Part shown: positions 7,082 through 62,940 of the stretch, one piece after another
Layout of the letters: every line of letters starts with the position of its first letter
How positions within the stretch are numbered: position 1 is the stretch's first letter
Source: Octopus sinensis
Lineage: Eukaryota
Direction: 5' to 3'
Assembly: GCF_006345805.1 (NCBI RefSeq)
Contig: NW_021832223.1
Span: 310,001 to 374,000 of the forward strand
Length of the DNA: 64,000 nt
Notes under the pieces: model-generated
Told to the model about the DNA's origin: nothing
Seen by the model: the letters and a program-made list of their open reading frames with translations, nothing else
Databases searched by the model: none
Translations under genes and position numbers: made by a program

Positions 7082-8609
<1,528 letters not shown>

Positions 8610-17533: not shown

Positions 17534-18611
17534 GGATCACATTAAAAACGCCCCCAAATATACACATATTAAACAAACGCCCCCAAATTTACACATATTA
17601 AACAAACGCCCCCAAATTTACACATATTTAACAAACTCCCCTAAATTTACACATATTAAACAAACGCCCCTAAATTTACACATGTCAAACATTCGACGAA
17701 AACATTAAAATGATGTAAAACTAAAAATCAAATTTATAAATAAATACTATACTTTAGAACAAGTTTATTGAACAACATAATAATTTTCAAAGCTCCATTA
17801 ACTTTCAAAAGGATCACCAATACGTTGTCACGCCACATAAATTCGTTTAGGTAGTCTTGTAAAAATTCTTTTTTGACACCTTTCATTTTCTTACAACGCA
17901 ATTTGTTTTTATTCCAATAGGACTCCACATGTTGGTATGAACACCGGTGGTTGGTTCAATAAAGTTAATTGAGTGGTTCACAGTAGCGTGGTCATACCCA
18001 AAAACATTCAAATTGGAATAGGCCCTCCATTCATCAATAGGATAATTGATCCTGGCAGAATTACTTCACAGATAATTGGTTTTAAAGTGGCCGCTGATCG
18101 ATTTAGAACCACTCGCATAAAACCTCTTGCCGGTGAAAATGAGGTATCAACAATACCGAATACCCACACTTGAGAATTAGCAAGTCTACCCCGATGGTAC
18201 TTTTGTTTATGACAAAAGAGACTTTCATCGATTTGGCAGACTACATTTTCTTCACCCAATTTTACGGGATTACTTTCAAAGTGTCTGTTAATACATTTTC
18301 TAATGGTTTTAAAAATTTCTATAAGTGTTGGAGATGATACAGTCAGTGATTTTTTAATCATAACAATTGATTCTTCATTGCTCCACCTATACAAAATATC
18401 TAACCATGTTTTGAGACTTATACTCGAAGTAGCCAAAACAGAACCTGTTCGTATTGACAATGTGGTCTTGTATTTTGAACAGTTTTGATTCTGACATTTC
18501 CAAGTATATTGGTCAGATAAGGTACGCTTAACTTCACACATATTAAATAAACGCCCCTAACTTTACACATATTAAACAAACGCCCCTGGGGGCGTTTGTT
18601 TTATGTGATCC
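17534..18611 (-). mobile_element. Merlin (ISXO2-like DDE) transposon
   Basis: TIRs GGATCACAT..AAACGCCCCCA. Perfect 8-bp TSD CCCGATTC (17526-33, 18612-19). Transposase QIDESLF..KYHRGR..WVFG, then after a 1-nt frameshift DEWRAY..HATVNHS..GVHTQHVESYW..YLNEFMWR. Confidence 0.95.
17546..17690. repeat. 29-bp tandem array (5 units) inside the Merlin end; 2 further units at about 18530-18587
   Basis: Unit AAACGCCCC[CT]AAATTTACACATATTAAAC with period 29. Confidence 0.9.
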
Positions 18612-20583: not shown

Positions 20584-21961
20584 ATGCGCACACCAGTTGC
20601 CATGAATTTTGACAAGCCCATGCGCATTGATGGGTTCTGTGACCTTGGTGACCCCACTGGCCACGCGGGTCACACATTGCCTGTTTACTCTTTAGGCAAG
20701 ACATACACCCCGAGTTACCTTTCCAAAGGCTTTCACCCATGTGTGGTGTGTGGGGACGCCTCCACGGGATTTCACTACAAAAAAATGACTTGCGAGGGCT
20801 GCAAGGTATCCCTCTACATCAGTTTTCAGGGGTTCTTCCGACGGACAGTCCAAAAGCAGATCGAATATAAGTGCAAGTACAACAACTCTTGCAAAATCGA
20901 AAAGAACACTCGCAATCAGTGTCAGGACTGCCGATTCAAAAAATGCATCGACAGTGGCATGGACCGATGGCGTAGGTGTCCTTGCTTACTCTTAGTCGTA
21001 CTCTCCGACAACCAGCGACTGGCCAAGCGACAGTTGATTGAGAACAATCGGGTCACCAAGAAAAACGGACAGTCCCGGACTCAGAACGAGACAGGCATTC
21101 AAGAAAGCCAACAGGAAGAGAAATATATGGCCATGCTAAAGGAGTGCTACGATAAGGATCTTGCGCCTTTGATGGGAGTGCCGAGGAGTCTCACAATCAT
21201 CTGTAACCACGAATTCAAGTTGTACAACACCGACAAGACCTTCACGTTCTGTACAGAAAACGACGACGAAAAGTGGCTAGAAATTGTCAAGGCAATCAGC
21301 ATGGGGACAAATCACTTGTTCAAATTTATCACCAAAATGACTTTGATAAACAAGGTTAATGGGTTATGTAACGTCCATTCAGTTCTCCCCTGAAGATAGG
21401 GCAAATCTGCTCAAGAATTCCCTTACGGAAACCACTCTTTTGTGTGTATTCCAGAAATATGCATGTTTGGACAATCCGATCAACTTCCCTAACGGACTGA
21501 TTGTCTTTCCCGACGGAATGCAAAGAACTGAGAACGTTCAATTTCTGGAGAACCTGTTCAGCCTGGCCAAGTCCTTCAACAATATTAGACTGGATTCCTA
21601 CGAGTCTGCCCTCTCTTTGTGCATTTTAATGTTCCGTCGAGGTCCCTGCTTGTGTTCTATGATAGGGAATGTACAAGTGGAGGACACGTGCACTGCAGAC
21701 TTTGAACTACAGAGGTACATCCAACTGCTCAAAACGTACGAATCCTGCCTTCAAAGGGCAGGAAGATGTGAACAGATTTTAATTGTGTTAAGTCATCTAC
21801 ACGAACTGTCCGCCCAACTGCAGGATAAGATGCTCACACTAAACGTGGACCACATTCAGAGAATCCCCGAAGTGATCCTCGAGTGCATCCACGTCGTCGA
21901 AAACTCTGAGAGTTCAGACTCTTTGACCTCTGAAAACACTTCCGACGAAAACCTGAAATAA
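20584..21961 (+). CDS. THR: Thyroid hormone receptor-like nuclear receptor (NR1A)
   Basis: YTPSYL..CVVCGD..CEGCK|[17 protein letters not shown] and the TR-type hinge [19 protein letters not shown], followed by a divergent LBD. Introns 20806-829, 20972-995, 21355-382 and probably 21642-665. Confidence 0.87.
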
Positions 21962-37910: not shown

Positions 37911-39391
37911 TCATTCCTGTACTTCTCTGAAAGCTCTGAAAACAGTAGACAACCTGGGAACACTCTGCTGAAATAAAGGACCGTTCATTTCACTGAGCTG
38001 CCTGATGGTCGCCAGAGTAATCACTTTTATGTTCTGCGACCAGTGAGACATTGAGGTCTTGTAGAGGGCGGGGATGAATGCCTTGTAGGCATCAGAGTAG
38101 TGTTCTGAGATAATTTTGACCATCCAGTTCTCTTGGACACTCAAAAGAGTAGTCTCAGCAATCTAAAGTATTACAAATCACGGAACTGGAGAAAATTGAT
38201 TTTCGAAGCAATGAGCCCAAAAAACGAGAAACCTTTTTATAGACTGATCGGCCAGCTGAGGGGGGTCTGCATGTAAAAGAATCCCCCTCATTTCACACAC
38301 AAAATACAACTAAACTAAAAAACCCCCACAAACCCCCTTCCGAGAATCATTTCGCGGAAAATATCTGATTAAATATTCTAGAATATTTTGGCCAAATCTT
38401 TTGTCTCTTCCCACGAAAGTTTGAATGCAATTTGACAACTAAAGACGTGCACTGGGCCCCGACCTGTCGATGAAATAGAGGCATGGAACGAGTTCTGTAC
38501 AGAGGGAGAATAAAGTTGATCACAAAGTCAATATTCTGCTGTTTGAATGGCACACTGAATCCTTCGAGAAAACTATCATGTTGATGAGGTAAAACCTCAA
38601 ATATGAGGACAACAATTCCCCCACTCCGTTAAATCTTTCTCCCGCGTAAATAAACCTAAATTTGACCCCGAACAGCCCACCCCGAAAGCACATCTTGTAT
38701 TTGTTTGTGCACAAACATTCTGACCCAAAGCAGTTTCTGATATATTTTTTTCAGTATTTTTTCAAGCCAGTTCCGTTCTCTCAAATCCTGTGAGTCAAAA
38801 AGGTAGATAAGCTAAGGCAGTCAATCTTAGGGGTACCCTCCTTACGAACTGCTTGTTGATCCTCTTTCGGTCTCCACTGGGTGACAGGCTCTTCAAGTCC
38901 AACAAGTTGAGGAGAAATTGGTAGACCAACTGCCCTGTAAGGAAAGAGTACTTCGAGGTGGGGCCAGGAGACTTCCACGAATGACTCCAATCCTTCAATG
39001 TCCACTCCACGGTGGTAGTCACATGGAGGTAGTTCACGGAAGATGTTGACAGTCACCATGTGGTAGGAAGAGGAGAAGAAATTGTCCCCGAACTGGTGTC
39101 GACAATTTGTGGCGCAAAAGTCAATAATTTCGCACAAAAGAGCCCGTTTTATTTCCTTTTCCCTCAATAAACTTAAATTGTCATTAAAGTCGAAAAGGAA
39201 ACAGCACGACTCCAATTTTTTGATACACAAATTCTCCTTAGTGGGGATATTGCCGATGTCTGGATGTAGAAAGTGGGTTTACCACGAAGGAGACATCCCT
39301 GTCCGTAGTTCTCGGGGATCCTTACATCCTTGGTTCGTCGGCTGTTGATTTTTTGCACGTGTGGTGATACTCTATCGACGTTCATAAACAC
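37911..39391 (-). CDS. PPP2R5: PP2A regulatory subunit B' (B56)
   Basis: IKKLESCCFLFDF..KEIKR, VNIFRELPP, EVSWPHLE, FDSQD.RER, ERFNGVGELL, SHWSQNI. Confidence 0.92.
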
Positions 39392-43021: not shown

Positions 43022-44533
43022 CAGTAAAACCTCTCGAATCCGCCGATTTTTTGGTCGGTCCCAAAATCGGCGGATTCGAGAAGCAATTTAAATAATATTT
43101 TATAGTTGAAATATGAACTTACAATATAGATTAAGTATTTCTTTTTATATACAAATGACTGAATACATAAAATTATTTATATTCAAAAAAATCAGAAATT
43201 TTATTTTTTTTAATTGATTTTCTTAACATTTCCCCAATTCGCATAATATTTTCATGATCATCTATATCTGCATTTACCTGAGAAGCATAAGTTTTAATAA
43301 TCTCTAGAGCTCTGAAGGCTTCTGAGAGATCAACTTTTTTCTCATTTGATTCCTCTTCAATAATTGTTTCCTAAGTATAATTATTAAATAAAATCACTAA
43401 CTGATTGAACTTTTTTTTGACTGTAATGTACCAGCTTGTTCAGATTTGTCTAAAAATTCGATTAGCTCTTCATTTTCAGTATATCCGTAATCAACAAATT
43501 CACTATAAGATATTGGATCGTCAATTTGAAATTTCTTCATGATTATTTTCGTAGTTCTTAGATTCACTGTTGATTGTGATTGTTTCACATTTTATCCATT
43601 GTGAAATGGGTGTAGGTAACATATTTTCCAATGTTGAAATTTTTAAAACACCTTGGACTTTTGAATCTTCCTATCATCACAGGCCTTCTTTTATCGGAAC
43701 CAGAACAATTTGCGCATAATAATAACGAAAATCGATCCTTCGACAACTTTATTCCAGGCCGTGATTTGGTGCACACACTTTTGGAAGGAATCGCCTTGTA
43801 AAAAACACCAGTTTCATCTGCATTATAAACATTGTCCAATCCATATTGTTCAATTTTTAAACGCATTGTTTCATTAAAATCAGTAATAGATTTTTCATCA
43901 TGATTTACTGATCCACTGTCTCCGTGATATTTTCTTAACTTGATAGCATTTCGTAATTTAAACTTTTCTAGCCACCCACGACTTGCTTTAAATTCTGGAA
44001 AATTTTTTCCAAACTTAAGAGCTTTTGCAATTAACATCGAATCTGATAGAATTGCTCCACTAGATTCCATTAAGTTAATCCATGTTATCATCGCTACATC
44101 AATTTCATTAAATTTGAGTTTTGGAATTCTCGTTATGTTTAATTTTTTGATGTCAGTCCTATTCAAAAGGTCCGATTTTGATTTAAGGTCGTTTATAGTT
44201 CTCAGAGAAATTTTCTTTTTTAACCGTGAAGAAAAATCCTGGAAATTTGAGGTGCAGAAACGAATGGGTTGTCAGAAATATAACGTAGTATAGAAATTTT
44301 TCGTTGATAGAAAGTCTAACACAGCGACGCATCACAAAAATACAATTAACGTGTAATGAGAATTTTAAAATGTTAATTAATTTAACTTACAATTAGATAA
44401 ACAAATTATTTTTCATAATACTTGAGGAGCGGATTCGAGAAACAAGCGGATTCAAGAATCATTCATAGGAAATTTCAAATTTTTGATTAAAACAAGCGGA
44501 TTCGAGAAGCAGCGGATTCGAGAGGTTTCACTG
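43022..44533 (-). mobile_element. pogo/Tigger transposon, internally deleted
   Basis: 22-bp TIRs CAGT[AG]AAACCTCTCGAATCCGC with TA TSD. CENP-B HTH (FKASRGWLEKFKLR) and NVYNADETG. The DDE domain is truncated after YTHF. Confidence 0.92.
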
Positions 44534-46257: not shown

Positions 46258-46605
46258 TCAGGACCACAAGAAATTAATTGGAATTTATTTAATAAATTTT
46301 AAAAACATTATAATATCCTTTAAAAACAACACTATTCAAAAACAAACAAGGCTGACTAAACACTTAATAATACTCACTAATCCGTCATAAGCCCATCGAC
46401 CCTCAACCTACACCACCTGTGAGTGACTGAGAAGGAATCATTAATGTGCAATATCGATATATCAATTGGTGTGATAAGCCGAATTATAAGCAATATAAAT
46501 ACGTCTTATCAAGTCGTTAAAGTTGACTGTCTGCAGATCAAAGAAAGACTATTATTCATACGAGATTAATCGTATATAAATGTCTTGTGCCGTTCCCCTC
46601 GTGCA

Positions 46606-47705
46606 ATGCCGCTCTATGTCTTCCTACTCTGCCTTACTACTTCTCGCAAACATTGGTAGGCTTTCCTCTCATTTATAGGCTACAAATGTCTCGCATACCA
46701 CGGGAAATTATCCAAACTAATGATCTCCTTTCTGTAGCACGACAAATCCAGAGTTACTGCAGTCCTACATTCGGACTTGAAGAATACCAATCAGAGATAT
46801 GCCGAAAAAATCCCTCACACATTCAAATACTAATCAAAGCCTCTAAACTGGCTCTAACCGAATGCCAGAGAATATTCAAGAACGATCGCTGGCAGTGCAA
46901 CCCGCAAACTCGAGGCAATCAATCCCTCTTCTCCTACATCCTCAACTACCGTAACGAGCATTGTAATTCCTCCTTAGCAAATAAGGAGACCGCCTTCCTC
47001 AACGCCTTGTCGACCGCTGCCTTGCATTACACACTGGCAGAGGACTGCAAAGAAGGGAGGCTGCCGAGGGACTGCGGGTGCTCCATTGGGCCCCCCTCTG
47101 AGTACATGCACGGGGAATGGGCGTGGAAGGGGTGTGGTGACAATGTCGAATATGGAGAGGAATTTTCCCGCCTTTTTACACAGGGCGGGAAAAAATCAGA
47201 GTACGACCTGGTTCGACGTAGAAATTGTGGCATTGGAATTAAAGTCGTCAAGGAGACTACCACTGTCCACTGTGACTGTCTTGGAAAAGGCGGGAAATGT
47301 GAAGCCAAAACGTGTTGGCAGAAATTGCCCGCCTTTCAAGTAGTGGGAAATCGAATCCAGGAATTGTACGACTCGGCAGTGCAGGTGGTGGAGGTGGGGG
47401 GAGGTCTGAGGACACATTTCCCCACGGACGTGATGAGGGAGGACACACTCGTCTATGTGGAGGGTTCCCCCAACTACTGCGAGCGATTCGAAGACTACGG
47501 AATTGAGGGAGTCGTCGGCCGTGAGTGCAACCCAAAAAACGAATCTCGACTGGATCTGCCGTACTGCCACAAATTATGCTGTGGAAGAGGATTTGAGAGA
47601 CAGGAAATAACCAAGGCAGAGAACTGCAATTGCCGATTCGTGTGGTGCTGTCGAGTGGAATGTGACACGTGCACAACTACTAAGGTTGCTTATTACTGTC
47701 TGTGA
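46606..47705 (+). CDS. WNT: Wnt ligand, divergent, lacking the acylation-site serine
   Basis: Wnt Cys scaffold: ECQ..F..DRWQC, KETAF, WAWKGCGDNVEYG, KTCW, SPNYC, GREC, LCCGRG, CNCRFVWCCRVECDTC. Introns 46656-678 (23 nt) and 46951-977 (27 nt). Confidence 0.93.
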
Positions 47706-47896
47706 ATAATATTTGACTAATCGTTTGATTTATTCTTAAATGTTAATTTACTTGATTATATATACACACATTGGGACATTCTAAATGTAACCAACAGAAG
47801 GCAAATATTAATAAAATTATTTATTTGATTTGAAAATTATCTCCAAGCCATTGCTACAAAATAATAATAAATATTCCAACATTAAATTTTCCTTGT

Positions 47897-53293: not shown

Positions 53294-56200
53294 TGTTTAA
53301 TAAAAATTAATTATGTAAATTCTATCTTAAATTATTTAAGAATCCAGATCGTCAGTGATTTCTCTTCTTCGCTTGGAAGAAGAGTTTGCAACAAAATTCT
53401 CATCATTTTCCATTTCTGCGTCAAAGTAATTGTTCAACTGAGTGTCCTCACGACATGCCAGCTCCGCAAGTTGATTGGCGGCAGAGGCGTACTCCTCGTT
53501 GTCTACCTTCATCCCATGTCTGTGTTCAATAAGCATACTCTCTAGAGTCCTCTTCAACACAACCGACTGGATGTATGTCCTCGTTCCTTCTTCAATGAAT
53601 AACTTGTCCATATGACTTTTAAAGAACTTTGAGACAACTCCATCCCATGTCAAGACAATTGGAATAATCTTCACTTTTGCTTCATAGAGAACCGACAGTT
53701 CGTTTGCAAGCAGGTCATATTTGTGAAATTTCTCCACTTCAACTTGCTTTAAACGGTCTTGCGAGGTAACTCCCACTTCGATTAAATGAATTTCTCTTTT
53801 CCTCTTGTCATAAACGAAGATATCAGGTTTATTGAATTGAACCTTAGTTTCAGTCATAATTGACGTGTCAACTCTGATTTCGACATTTTGGGCCGACATT
53901 GTTGACACAACTGAATGTCCTTTCAATTTCCTGCTTCGTTTTATTCCATACATTCGACACAAGTGGAGATGAATACACTTTACCACTTCGTTGTGTCTTC
54001 GGAGATAATCACTGTTTAGCATCCTACCACACCGCGTGGCTAGATGGTCAACAGTCTGCCTGCTTTTTTTGCAGTGGACGCATAGTGATCCCGTGTATGC
54101 AAAGAACAAATTCCTATCTTGCAAAAGACAGTACAATGCTTCGCTTCGTGGACCATTGTTCCCTTTCGATAGCCATTGCGAAGAAGTAGATATGTCCACA
54201 TCTGATTCCTCCATACATTTGAACATCACCGAGTGTAGTGATTTACTGTTAATTCGGTTAAGCAAGAGTTTCCTTTGTGCGTCCTTCAGTAACTCAATGG
54301 TCAGATTTTCCCTGCCGACAGCTGCATATTTGGAGACAAGAAATTCTGCGATTGTGGCTAAGTGCCATTTTTTTCCTTTTATTACTCGCAGAATACCCGA
54401 CCTCCGCAGACAGGTAGTCGACTGTTTTTCCAAACTTTTAAGAAACTGGAAAGCATTAATTCGCTTTTGAAAGAAATTGAGGCAAGTCCTCTTCCAAGGG
54501 TCTTGCGGTCTAAATACAACCTCTCCTTATTTGCAGGCTGGAGGTGTAACTTGAGAGTCGTAAGTAATCGGCGTATTTGTTGGTCAATCTCATCAAATTC
54601 GTAAGGTTCAATATTGATTAGCCCAATATAATAATTATATAGGGATAATGCATATTCATTGATTCCACGAAACAAATTTACAGCATTCAGGTTTGTTTTT
54701 GACAACATAGTTATCCTCTTCTTGACATTCTCCAATATGGAGTCCATAACTTTATTCTTGAGAACATTACTTCCGCCATCTTCAAGTACACCCAAGTAGC
54801 GATATCCGTTGATTCCATCGACAGTCTCACAGCATGATAAAGATTCCACATTAGATGCTGATTTTTCGAATTCATCTCTAGGCCGACACTTTCAAAAAAT
54901 CCATTAACAGCCTCCATCATTTTGACTAACACATCTTCTTTGAGGGCAACTATTTTCAGATCGTCAATAAAGAAGAAATGATTGGTGGAGTATGTCAACA
55001 TATTGGGATCTTCCCGACTAATTTCGAGTTTGGGAAACATGGAGTTAAGCATCCTGCTTAGGGGATCCATCGCCATAACGAATAGCAGCGGGGACAATGA
55101 ATCTCCTTGGAGTATTCCCCGGCTTAACTTTACTTTCCCAATCTTTTTCCCATCGATATGTAAGTTTACTGTCCACTTCTTGACTATGTTCTTTACAAAG
55201 CTGACAATCGAATGTGGTATTCCAGAGCAATCCAATACGTGGAACAAGAACTCGTGATCAACTGAGTCAAATGCCTTCTTCACATCGACCCAAGCAGAAT
55301 AGAGGCCATTTCCATACTCCTTATTTAAACATTGGTTAATGAGAGCTTGCTCTTTGGCGCCTTGACATTGCTTTCTCGTCCCAAGCTGATTATCTGAGAT
55401 TAAGCCAAATGCCTCGATGAAATCGGCCAGTTTGGCATTAACACATTTGGTGACAAGTTTATACAAAGTTGGCATACACGTTATAGGGCGTAAGTCCTTC
55501 GGGGTCTCACACTCACTTTTTTTAGGGATCAAGTAAGTTACGCCAGTGTAAAACCAGCTATCAGGCGTGTACTCTCCATTAATTATTCGGACTATCTCTT
55601 TACACAGAAACCCATGCAAAGAATCCATCTTCTTTAAGAAAAAGTTATACGTTCCGTCGCATCCGCATGCCTTCCAGTCAGGTGCATATTTGAGCATATC
55701 CATAATAAAATCACTTGTGAATTGAGGTCGCATGGTTTCACCGCCAGTACACCTCACACCCACAAAATCATAAACTACGGGCCCCATATTTTTCTTGCTC
55801 CAGACATCTTCCCAAAATGATAAGCACTCACCATCACCAAACCCATACAGGGTGGCTTCGTTGCTCGAAGATAAGTTTCGATAAAATCTTCTGCGGTTTA
55901 ATTCAAAACACGCATTGTCTTTCCGGAAATTTTTCCTCAAGGAATGGATAGATATCTGTTTCTTTTTGATTCTAATTAGATCATTCAATAGAGTCTCAAT
56001 TCTGGTTAGCTCCCCCTTCTTAGACTTCTTATATCCGTAGCGGCAGAGAACATCCATTGCCTTTTGCTTTTCTGCCTGAGGCAAGGTTTGTTTGGAGAAG
56101 GAACGAACTGTGTCAATTTCATCTGCTAATTTAGAGATTTTTCTTTCCGTGTTTTCCAACCATGTGCTCTGTGGTCTGGCTCTCGTAGTTAAGGCCAAAT

Positions 56201-56868
56201 AAGCACACTGTGCAGCATATAGAATATCGGTAATTTGATTAATATCTTGGGGCGGATCATCTTTTGTAATATGATAAATTGCAGAATTTAATCCAGCCAG
56301 GATATCAGTTTTTACCATCCTTCGTTGCACCTTTGGAGTTGGCTTTCGAGAGTCTCTCTGAATAGACTGAACTTTCCCAATTGGAATTTGAGTTCCTCTA
56401 GGCAATTTCTGAAACTGGAAATTTCTACGTCCACATCATCTTGCACTCTGGAAGAGTCGCATCTCCCTTGCACATTGTTATTCCGTCTAGCCATGCTCTT
56501 TAGTTGGCATAAACTGGAGCACTTTGCCGAGTACTTCTCATTGAACTTCTCCAGGACAAGGTTCCAACCACCTCTTGGCATCCTTCCAAGTCTTTGCTTC
56601 GCGGCAAGGGCAATCTGAGACACCCATTCGCCTTCAGAGACACCATTGACATTTCCGATGATCGCAGAAAGAGAATGCAAGTTAGTTTTGGCAGCATCAC
56701 CAACAAGATCTTCTTTAACACCATTAGCTCTTGTGGCATTGTGAGGTCCCATAGGCGACGGTCCTGTCTTTTTTAAGTTCTTTTTATTTGCAGGAAGGCC
56801 CGTAGGTTTCGTTTTCCTTAACTGTTTGGAAACGTACATGCACACACCACAACAACTAAAATAATTTT
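53294..56868 (-). mobile_element. R4/Dong-like non-LTR retrotransposon (single ORF RT + RLE), near full length, three 1-nt frameshifts
   Basis: RT motifs (WKACG.DG, DLRPITC, DVKKAFDSV, GILQGDSLSP, FFIDDLK, YRYLG), CCHC finger (C..C..TVDHLATRC), RHNEV and KPDI..IEV..EK..KY. 15-bp flanking repeat AATATTTTTAAATAT at 53279-93 and 56869-83. Confidence 0.92.
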
Positions 56869-62402: not shown

Positions 62403-62940
62403 TCAGTCCCGATTATTGGGAATCTCTCTCCTCCTTTTAGGAGAAGAGCTTGCAACCAATTCCTCCTCACTCTCCATCTCCCCGTCAGATAGATTTTCTA
62501 TTTGTCTCATATCTTTCACCGGCGTGTCACGGCAGCATGCCACTTCTGCAAGCTGGTAAGCAGCAGAGGCGTATTCTTCGGCAGATACTCTCACTCCATG
62601 TCTGTGCTCAACTGCCATGCTTTCTAGCGTTCTTTTTAAAACAACAGATTGAATATAAGTTCTTGTGGCTTTTTCAATCGATAATTTGTCCATATAGTTT
62701 TTGAAGTATCTCGAAACAACGCCATCCCACGTCAAGACAAACGGGATAATCTTTACCTTTGCATCATAAAGTATCGAAAGTTCGTTTGCGAGCAGATCAT
62801 ATTTATGAAATTTCTCGATTTCGACTTGTTTAAGGCGATCTTGTGAAGTGATGCCAACTTCGATTATAGTTATCTCTTGTTTAGTTTTGTCATACACGAA
62901 GATATCTGGTTTGTTGAATTGAACTTTATTCCGTCATAAT
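62403..62940 (-). mobile_element. 5'-truncated sister copy of the R4/Dong-like element (RLE end)
   Basis: FNKPDIFVYDK..IEVGITSQDRLKQVEIEKFHKYDLLANEL, clearly homologous to 53336-53850 but diverged. Confidence 0.85.

Follow-up and report, generated by a model that had tools for sequence, protein, structure and literature searches.

Lipidated and Lipid-Free Wnts

Palmitoleoylation is regarded as a nearly universal prerequisite for the secretion of Wnt ligands through Wntless and for their binding to Frizzled. Porcupine acts on the hydroxyl group at the tip of the thumb hairpin and requires the conserved residues surrounding it, and in the XWnt8-Fz8 complex the Frizzled cysteine-rich domain (CRD) is also contacted by two other thumb residues, the basic one of CKC and the hydrophobic one preceding the acylated serine. 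The gene considered here is a Wnt gene in a window of 64,000 nucleotides (about positions 310001–374000 of scaffold VCDQ01005863.1), which was deposited within an octopus assembly and was found to be DNA of a dicyemid mesozoan; its product carries glycine in place of the serine that is acylated in other Wnts. The preferred reading, with a probability of about 0.7, is that of a functional dicyemid Wnt that is not acylatable at the canonical site, would be lipid-free, is probably the only Wnt of the animal and would have lost the serine independently of Drosophila WntD.

In the described systems, the thumb serine is O-palmitoleoylated by Porcupine, and Wntless binding depends on the lipid, which also inserts into the groove of the Frizzled CRD (PMC2427328, PMC10112924, PMC7873896). 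No other substrate of Porcupine is known (PMC10112924). WntD is the sole unlipidated Wnt named in reviews and the only characterised exception to palmitoleoylation; the lipid has been noted not to be a strict condition of signalling (PMC10112924). It is detergent-independent and abundantly secreted without Porcupine or Wntless (PMC2427328, PMC10112924), and the choice of this protein as natural precedent in the original prediction for this locus was appropriate, since WntD naturally lacks the acyl-serine, is unlipidated and leaves the cell without Wntless. Frizzled signalling without palmitoleate has also been found possible with engineered Ser-to-Ala Wnts, Norrin and Wnt surrogates (PMC10112924, PMC7873896). 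These are laboratory constructs or unrelated folds, whereas the dicyemid protein would be a natural Wnt fold.

The Acyl Site of the Dicyemid Wnt

The motif columns were placed by HMMER pairwise alignment with human Wnt5a and Wnt7a and by MAFFT alignment with 14 and with 62 other Wnts. The thumb of the window Wnt is encoded by TGT GAC TGT CTT GGA AAA GGC GGG AAA TGT and reads CDCLGKGGKC, with Gly in the acyl column, which is Ser in 61 of the 62 aligned Wnts. The replacements extend to the other side chains of the motif: the histidine of CKCHG (61/62) is Leu, the second motif serine (60/62) is Lys, the residue preceding the acyl-serine (V, I, L or M in 61/62) is also Lys, and in CKC the basic position, K or R in all 62, is occupied by Asp. 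Both disulfide cysteine pairs and both glycines of the motif are kept, while all five side-chain positions are replaced. The disulfide-bounded loop LGKGGK contains neither Ser nor Thr, and the acyl-acceptor serine of the family motif CKCHGxSGSC is missing. Translation and alignment confirmed the original prediction in this respect, both for the GGC codon at the acyl-serine and for the additional changes at K, H and the second S (to D, L and K, respectively). The same prediction had described the HNN motif as RNC with one extra cysteine; the RNC reading held, but the cysteine is not the only extra one, a second being found within an insertion upstream. The statement that the rest of the cysteine scaffold is intact proved correct, and the main interpretation, a Wnt unable to carry the canonical lipid, likewise gained support at the level of sequence.

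Because the basic and the hydrophobic residues that touch the CRD are both replaced, the former with a reversal of charge, the changes suggest that site 1 as a whole was abandoned or remodelled to a basic, glycine-rich tip. Restoration of the serine by RNA editing was considered and rejected. Adenosine-to-inosine (A-to-I) editing causes A to be read as G, while a serine codon would require the change of GGC to AGC, so that a cDNA in which editing had restored the serine is unlikely to be found. No earlier description of the acyl site of a dicyemid Wnt was found in the literature searched.

Comparison with Other Wnts

A survey of the acyl site in approximately 270 Wnts (121 word-index matches and 148 cluster representatives) showed Ser in nearly all of them. 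Five Wnts have threonine at this position: three Wnt2b-like proteins of tunicates and one protein each of Rhopilema and Sycon. Another five of the surveyed Wnts, not counting the dicyemid protein, have no hydroxyl residue there. Phenylalanine is present in a protein of the acanthocephalan Neoechinorhynchus agilis that groups with Wnt5 (KAL7669904.1, CKCRGLFGSC) and in MOM-2 of Aphelenchus avenae (KAH7717822.1, CKCHGLFGAC), cysteine in a protein of the anemone Actinostola (KAK3753774.1, CKCHGVCGSC), CRCHGFKG-C is read in a protein with two tandem Wnt domains from the hemichordate Glandiceps talaboti (XP_077998206.1), and an unnamed ENA protein carries a deletion at the site (CKCHG--KSC). Two of these five come from parasitic or fast-evolving worms. 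No description of the five natural losses was found in the literature searched. As judged from the surveyed proteins, losses of the acyl site are sporadic and independent; they are rare, affecting a few percent of divergent Wnts, and the dicyemid case is not unique. It differs from the others in two respects: in the five, one or two residues are altered and the motif (CKC, H or R, and G) is largely kept, whereas the dicyemid loop is wholly rewritten, and they come mostly from phyla that normally have several Wnts, whereas the dicyemid Wnt is probably the sole one.

Like Drosophila WntD, the dicyemid protein is a natural Wnt without the acyl-acceptor serine in which the Wnt fold is kept. WntD, however, is one of several fly Wnts, the others of which are lipidated, while the dicyemid genome probably holds no Wnt besides this one; furthermore, the function of WntD is known. 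Orthology with WntD was not supported, WntD being the weakest match among the solved structures (55 bits, compared with 177 bits for Wnt5a) and a neighbor-joining (NJ) tree giving neither a WntD-like nor any other supported placement. With the canonical lipidated Wnts (Wnt5-, Wnt16- and Wnt4-like), for which the complexes XWnt8-Fz8 CRD and Wnt3-Fz8 CRD and those of Wnt3a, Wnt7a and Wnt8a with WLS are the structures of comparison, the dicyemid protein shares the full wnt domain, the 24 cysteines, the thumb scaffold, the index finger and the two-domain fold. It differs from them in the tip of the thumb, where the Ser, His, hydrophobic and basic residues of CKCHGVSGSC are missing, and in having nine residues inserted and about 17 deleted, two extra cysteines and no RWNCS sequon. 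What appears to be new at this locus, judged from its sequence, is a WntD-like, presumably lipid-free Wnt of independent origin in which the whole loop is rewritten and which is probably the sole Wnt of its bearer.

Conservation of the Wnt Fold

The open frame that contains the gene (46587–47705, forward strand, 372 codons) has no frameshift, and its product matched the Pfam wnt family (PF00110) with E = 6.3e-79 and 266 bits over profile positions 4–304 of 305, that is, in full length. A match of this strength over nearly the whole profile shows that the open reading frame (ORF) is not due to chance. Its closest solved relatives, as determined with HMMER, were human Wnt5a (E = 5e-51, 177 bits) and then Wnt7a. 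The Wnt identity that had been assigned to the ligand was accordingly upheld by Pfam, HMMER and Foldseek. All 24 columns in which at least 80% of the other Wnts have Cys are also Cys in the window Wnt, which has two extra cysteines in addition. The index-finger motif CxCxFxWCCxVxC is present as CNCRFVWCCRVEC, and its columns are invariant or near-invariant in the MAFFT alignment. On the other hand, about 17 residues preceding HNN are deleted in comparison with canonical Wnts, and the RWNCS sequon with its glycosylation site, Q63 and HNN are altered. The two extra cysteines, one in the insertion (46962–64) and one in RNC (47226–28), may pair as an additional disulfide or remain free.

The AlphaFold model of the protein had a predicted local distance difference test (pLDDT) score of 84.5 and a predicted template modelling (pTM) score of 0.81. 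In the numbering of the public gene model P0001, the thumb strands were predicted at residues 193–199 and 207–213 with pLDDT of about 90–97 and those of the index finger at residues 303–319 and 323–338, and values below 50 were obtained at residues 90–95, which correspond to the insertion. The top Foldseek matches of the model were Wnt3, Wnt7a and XWnt8, with template modelling (TM) scores of 0.64–0.79 and E-values down to 9e-22, and the predicted model displays the two-domain fold of thumb and index finger. As AlphaFold draws on the family alignment, the structural match does not confirm the sequence match independently. Taken with the alignments, the predicted model indicates that the window Wnt keeps the complete Wnt fold.

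Dicyemid Origin of the Window

Dicyemids, which parasitise the kidneys of octopuses and consist of about 30 cells, have ultra-short introns as a hallmark. The exact Wnt protein is recorded once, on the 522-kb scaffold of GCA_006345805.1 from which the window was taken, and this is an assembly of Octopus sinensis (PMC10700109). The beta subunit of ATP synthase (ATP5B), encoded in a single exon across residues 48–523, served as the taxonomic marker. It was identical to that of Dicyema acuticephalum (I7GPQ3) at 404 of 414 residues (98%), compared with 81–84% for all the other animals listed (82% for cuttlefish). The window holds about 12 genes and several transposons within 64 kb, and one ultra-short intron, of 24 nt, was verified by a conserved motif that it splits. 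Published dicyemid values agree with this picture: the D. japonicum genome, sequenced by Lu et al. from specimens taken from O. sinensis, has a GC content of 36.7%, a repeat content of 49% and introns averaging 38 bp (PMC6736024), and the median intron of Dicyema sp. is 27 bp (PMC6543705). An octopus origin was ruled out by the 98% identity to the Dicyema ATP5B and by the 24-nt intron. The window contains no N, and the Wnt gene is therefore physically contiguous with the dicyemid markers.

On this sequence evidence the window is dicyemid mesozoan DNA that was assembled together with Octopus sinensis, and the guess of a 'reduced animal' made in the original prediction was substantiated by the ATP5B identity. 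The entire 522-kb scaffold is presumably dicyemid as well. The marker suggests a Dicyema species close to D. acuticephalum as the source; ten differences in so conserved a protein make a congener likely and not necessarily that species itself. No earlier description of dicyemid contamination in this assembly was found in the literature searched. The proteins of the scaffold, including this Wnt, are filed in NCBI and UniRef under the host assembly, a reference genome in wide use, and parasite DNA labelled as that of the host can mislead studies of cephalopod gene families, Wnt counts among them.

Proposed Mode of Action and Significance

The genome of D. japonicum was reported to hold one wnt gene, one gene with the seven-transmembrane domain of Frizzled, two genes with a DIX domain and no gene with the Dishevelled-specific domain (PMC6736024, Table S6); Porcupine and Wntless do not appear in the published lists for this species. 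No second Wnt locus was found by tblastn in the 64-kb window, nor did the ORFs scanned in it include any MBOAT, Wntless or Frizzled gene. The window Wnt is probably the only one of the animal. If it is the ortholog of the single D. japonicum wnt, the animal would have no lipidated Wnt, and Porcupine, of which no other substrate is known (PMC10112924), would then be expected to be dispensable.

Under the preferred reading, the dicyemid Wnt would be made without the canonical lipid, would depend neither on Porcupine nor on lipid-dependent loading onto Wntless, and would exit the cell in soluble form, by analogy with WntD. Its binding to the single Frizzled of dicyemids, or to some other receptor, would rest on protein–protein contacts only, chiefly through the index finger and possibly through the newly basic thumb tip LGKGGK. 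The loss of the serine would be an event separate from that in WntD, on a branch that evolves very fast. The wider proposal that the dicyemid lineage as a whole signals through lipid-free Wnt, with Porcupine and Wntless lost and the single Frizzled binding by protein contacts, is more tentative and is put at somewhat below even odds.

If the sole Wnt of the animal is indeed unlipidated, a whole organism can develop on lipid-free Wnt signalling, and a natural, minimal and soluble Wnt–Frizzled pair would be available for biochemistry. A second independent loss of the modification would also be dated. The interest of the locus would rise if a conserved glycine, together with the loss of Porcupine and Wntless, were shown.

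Alternative Explanations

Several results weigh against the preferred reading, and some of them also speak for the view that the gene is a relic in decay. Much of the developmental toolkit is gone from dicyemids, and their Wnt could be under relaxed constraint or recently non-functional, the loss of the serine then being one degenerative change among many and not an adaptation. The protein is very divergent, with 19 of 58 near-invariant non-cysteine positions altered in the comparison with 62 Wnts, RWNCS, HNN and Q63 among them. The thumb is not significantly enriched in such changes (three of five near-invariant positions compared with 19/58 overall, Fisher p = 0.19 in a pre-set test), so that the serine loss could belong to a general relaxation; a post-hoc comparison of the five side-chain positions, all altered, with a background of about 36% gave roughly p = 0.006, a value not to be over-read. 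The public model P0001 (339 amino acids), for which an internal ATG (46686) was taken as start, is without a signal peptide, and as read from the DNA a secreted product would require the candidate upstream exon. The search for orthologs yielded no identity above 36% among 5.8 billion proteins or 41% among 1.84 billion representatives, read exhaustively, and the count of a single Wnt comes from D. japonicum, a different dicyemid species, which also lacks a gene with the Dishevelled-specific domain. Decay is nonetheless considered unlikely. The frame is open over 372 codons without a frameshift, the retention of all 24 cysteines, of both thumb glycines and of the index finger would not be expected under neutral drift at such divergence, and a candidate exon 1 upstream has good splice sites and a hydrophobic product. 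That the structural residues are all retained on so long a branch is taken as good evidence that a folded, secreted Wnt has been under selection.

Alternatively, the protein could be a lipid-free Wnt that acts as an antagonist or a host-directed factor, released in the renal fluid of the octopus and binding Frizzled or other receptors of the host and not signalling within the parasite. Dicyemids are attached to the host renal epithelium (PMC6736024), a soluble Wnt without lipid might spread by diffusion, WntD being secreted in large amounts (PMC2427328), and WntD is itself inhibitory ('Wnt inhibitor of Dorsal'). However, the window Wnt shows no special likeness to the Wnts of cephalopods or other molluscs, being about 33% identical to all of them with the cephalopod proteins outside the top matches, and the Frizzled and DIX-domain genes of D. 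japonicum would serve an endogenous pathway. The action on host receptors offered in the original prediction found no support, and a role in the host is considered improbable. Still less probable is an otherwise conventional pathway in which the lipid is attached to a residue outside the canonical site or by another enzyme. The threonine found in natural tunicate, jellyfish and sponge Wnts indicates some plasticity of the site, and three threonines lie ahead of the hairpin (TTTVHC), but the loop itself offers neither Ser nor Thr, and both the histidine of CKCHG and the hydrophobic residue preceding the serine are gone. An artefact, be it an error of sequencing or assembly or a misread octopus gene, can hardly be credited, even though the long-read assembly does include contaminant DNA. 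Five of the ten motif residues differ, which a single sequencing error is insufficient to explain, as had been argued from the start, and sequencing error altogether was ruled out by the occurrence of five substitutions within 30 nt with no indel, no frameshift and no N in the window. The locus is, moreover, contiguous with unmistakably dicyemid genes, and an octopus Wnt would be much nearer to the mollusc Wnts than 33%.

Placement among Wnt Subfamilies

The NJ analysis, made with 200 bootstraps, assigned the protein to no subfamily: the best sister group obtained 46% support, and the branch is long. By HMMER score, Wnt5 and Wnt16 are marginally favoured.

Gene Model and Features of the Window

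The coordinates of the features are collected in Table 1. The exon-1 models are enumerated combinations of start, donor and acceptor, taken from the DNA alone, and both give a hydrophobic N-terminus and an identical Wnt domain. Model A is favoured by the first-ATG rule; the version with a 23-nt intron is favoured because the dicyemid median intron is 27 nt (PMC6543705).

Table 1. Positions of the Wnt gene, its motifs and the marker features in the window (a slash marks a splice boundary).
Feature	Position	Strand	Basis or remark
Main Wnt coding exon, including stop TGA 47703-47705	46738..47705	+	ORF list, Pfam, HMMER, tblastn
Thumb (hairpin 2) motif CDCLGKGGKC in place of CKCHGVSGSC	47271..47300	+	Translation, alignments
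GGC (Gly) at the Porcupine-acylated serine position (Ser209 of mouse Wnt3a)	47289..47291	+	Alignment
RNC (AGA AAT TGT) in place of HNN, extra Cys = C181 of P0001	47220..47228	+	Alignments
Lineage-specific insertion of about 9 residues (…YRNEHCNSS…), with second extra Cys (46962-64) and N-S-S sequon	46947..46973 (approximate bounds)	+	Alignment
Index-finger hairpin CNCRFVWCCRVECDTC, Frizzled site 2	47625..47672	+	Conserved F, W, V and all Cys kept
Candidate exon 1, signal-peptide-like N-terminus	46580..46655	+	Splice/ORF enumeration, inferred
Model A exon 1, MSCAVPLVQCRSMSSYSALLLLANI...	ATG 46580	+	Donor G/GTAGG at 46656
Model B exon 1, different frame, MPLYVFLLCLTTSRKHW...	ATG 46606	+	Same donor G/GTAGG at 46656
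Candidate intron, model A, 82 nt, acceptor ...tttctgtag/ca	46656..46737	+	Splice enumeration
Candidate intron, model B, 23 nt	46656..46678	+	Splice enumeration
Possible polyadenylation signal, first AATAAA 3' of the stop	47810..47815	+	Consensus match only
ATP synthase beta gene, taxonomic marker	7082..8467	-	Same gap-free sequence as the Wnt gene
GT..AG intron, 24 nt, splitting CEGCK/GFFRR of the nuclear-receptor DNA-binding domain	20806..20829	+	Conserved motif

Neighbouring Genes and Elements

Some 7 kb upstream of the Wnt gene is a gene for the PP2A regulatory subunit B56 (38781–39230, reverse strand). In other animals Wnt/beta-catenin signalling is modulated by B56 subunits, but the linkage of the two genes is probably coincidental. 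A fragment of a Tc5/pogo-type transposase (HTH_Tnp_Tc5 and DDE_1; 43585–44166, reverse strand) is found 2.5 kb upstream of the Wnt gene, and the public annotation merges this fragment and the adjoining B56 gene in one model. The nuclear-receptor gene (20584–21961, forward strand) matched zf-C4 with E = 2e-24 and has a weak ligand-binding domain; the 24-nt intron listed in Table 1 is in-frame, and a second of about 24 nt is probably present near 20971–20994. In a retroelement at 53336–56845 (reverse strand), one ORF encodes a reverse transcriptase (RVT_1, E = 2e-28) and another the C-terminal part. A closely similar copy of the C-terminal ORF was found at 62403–62897 on the same strand, in keeping with the high repeat content (49%) of the dicyemid genome described by Lu et al. 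(PMC6736024). A weak ISXO2/IS1595-like DDE match (E = 4e-4) was located at 18008–18541 on the reverse strand.

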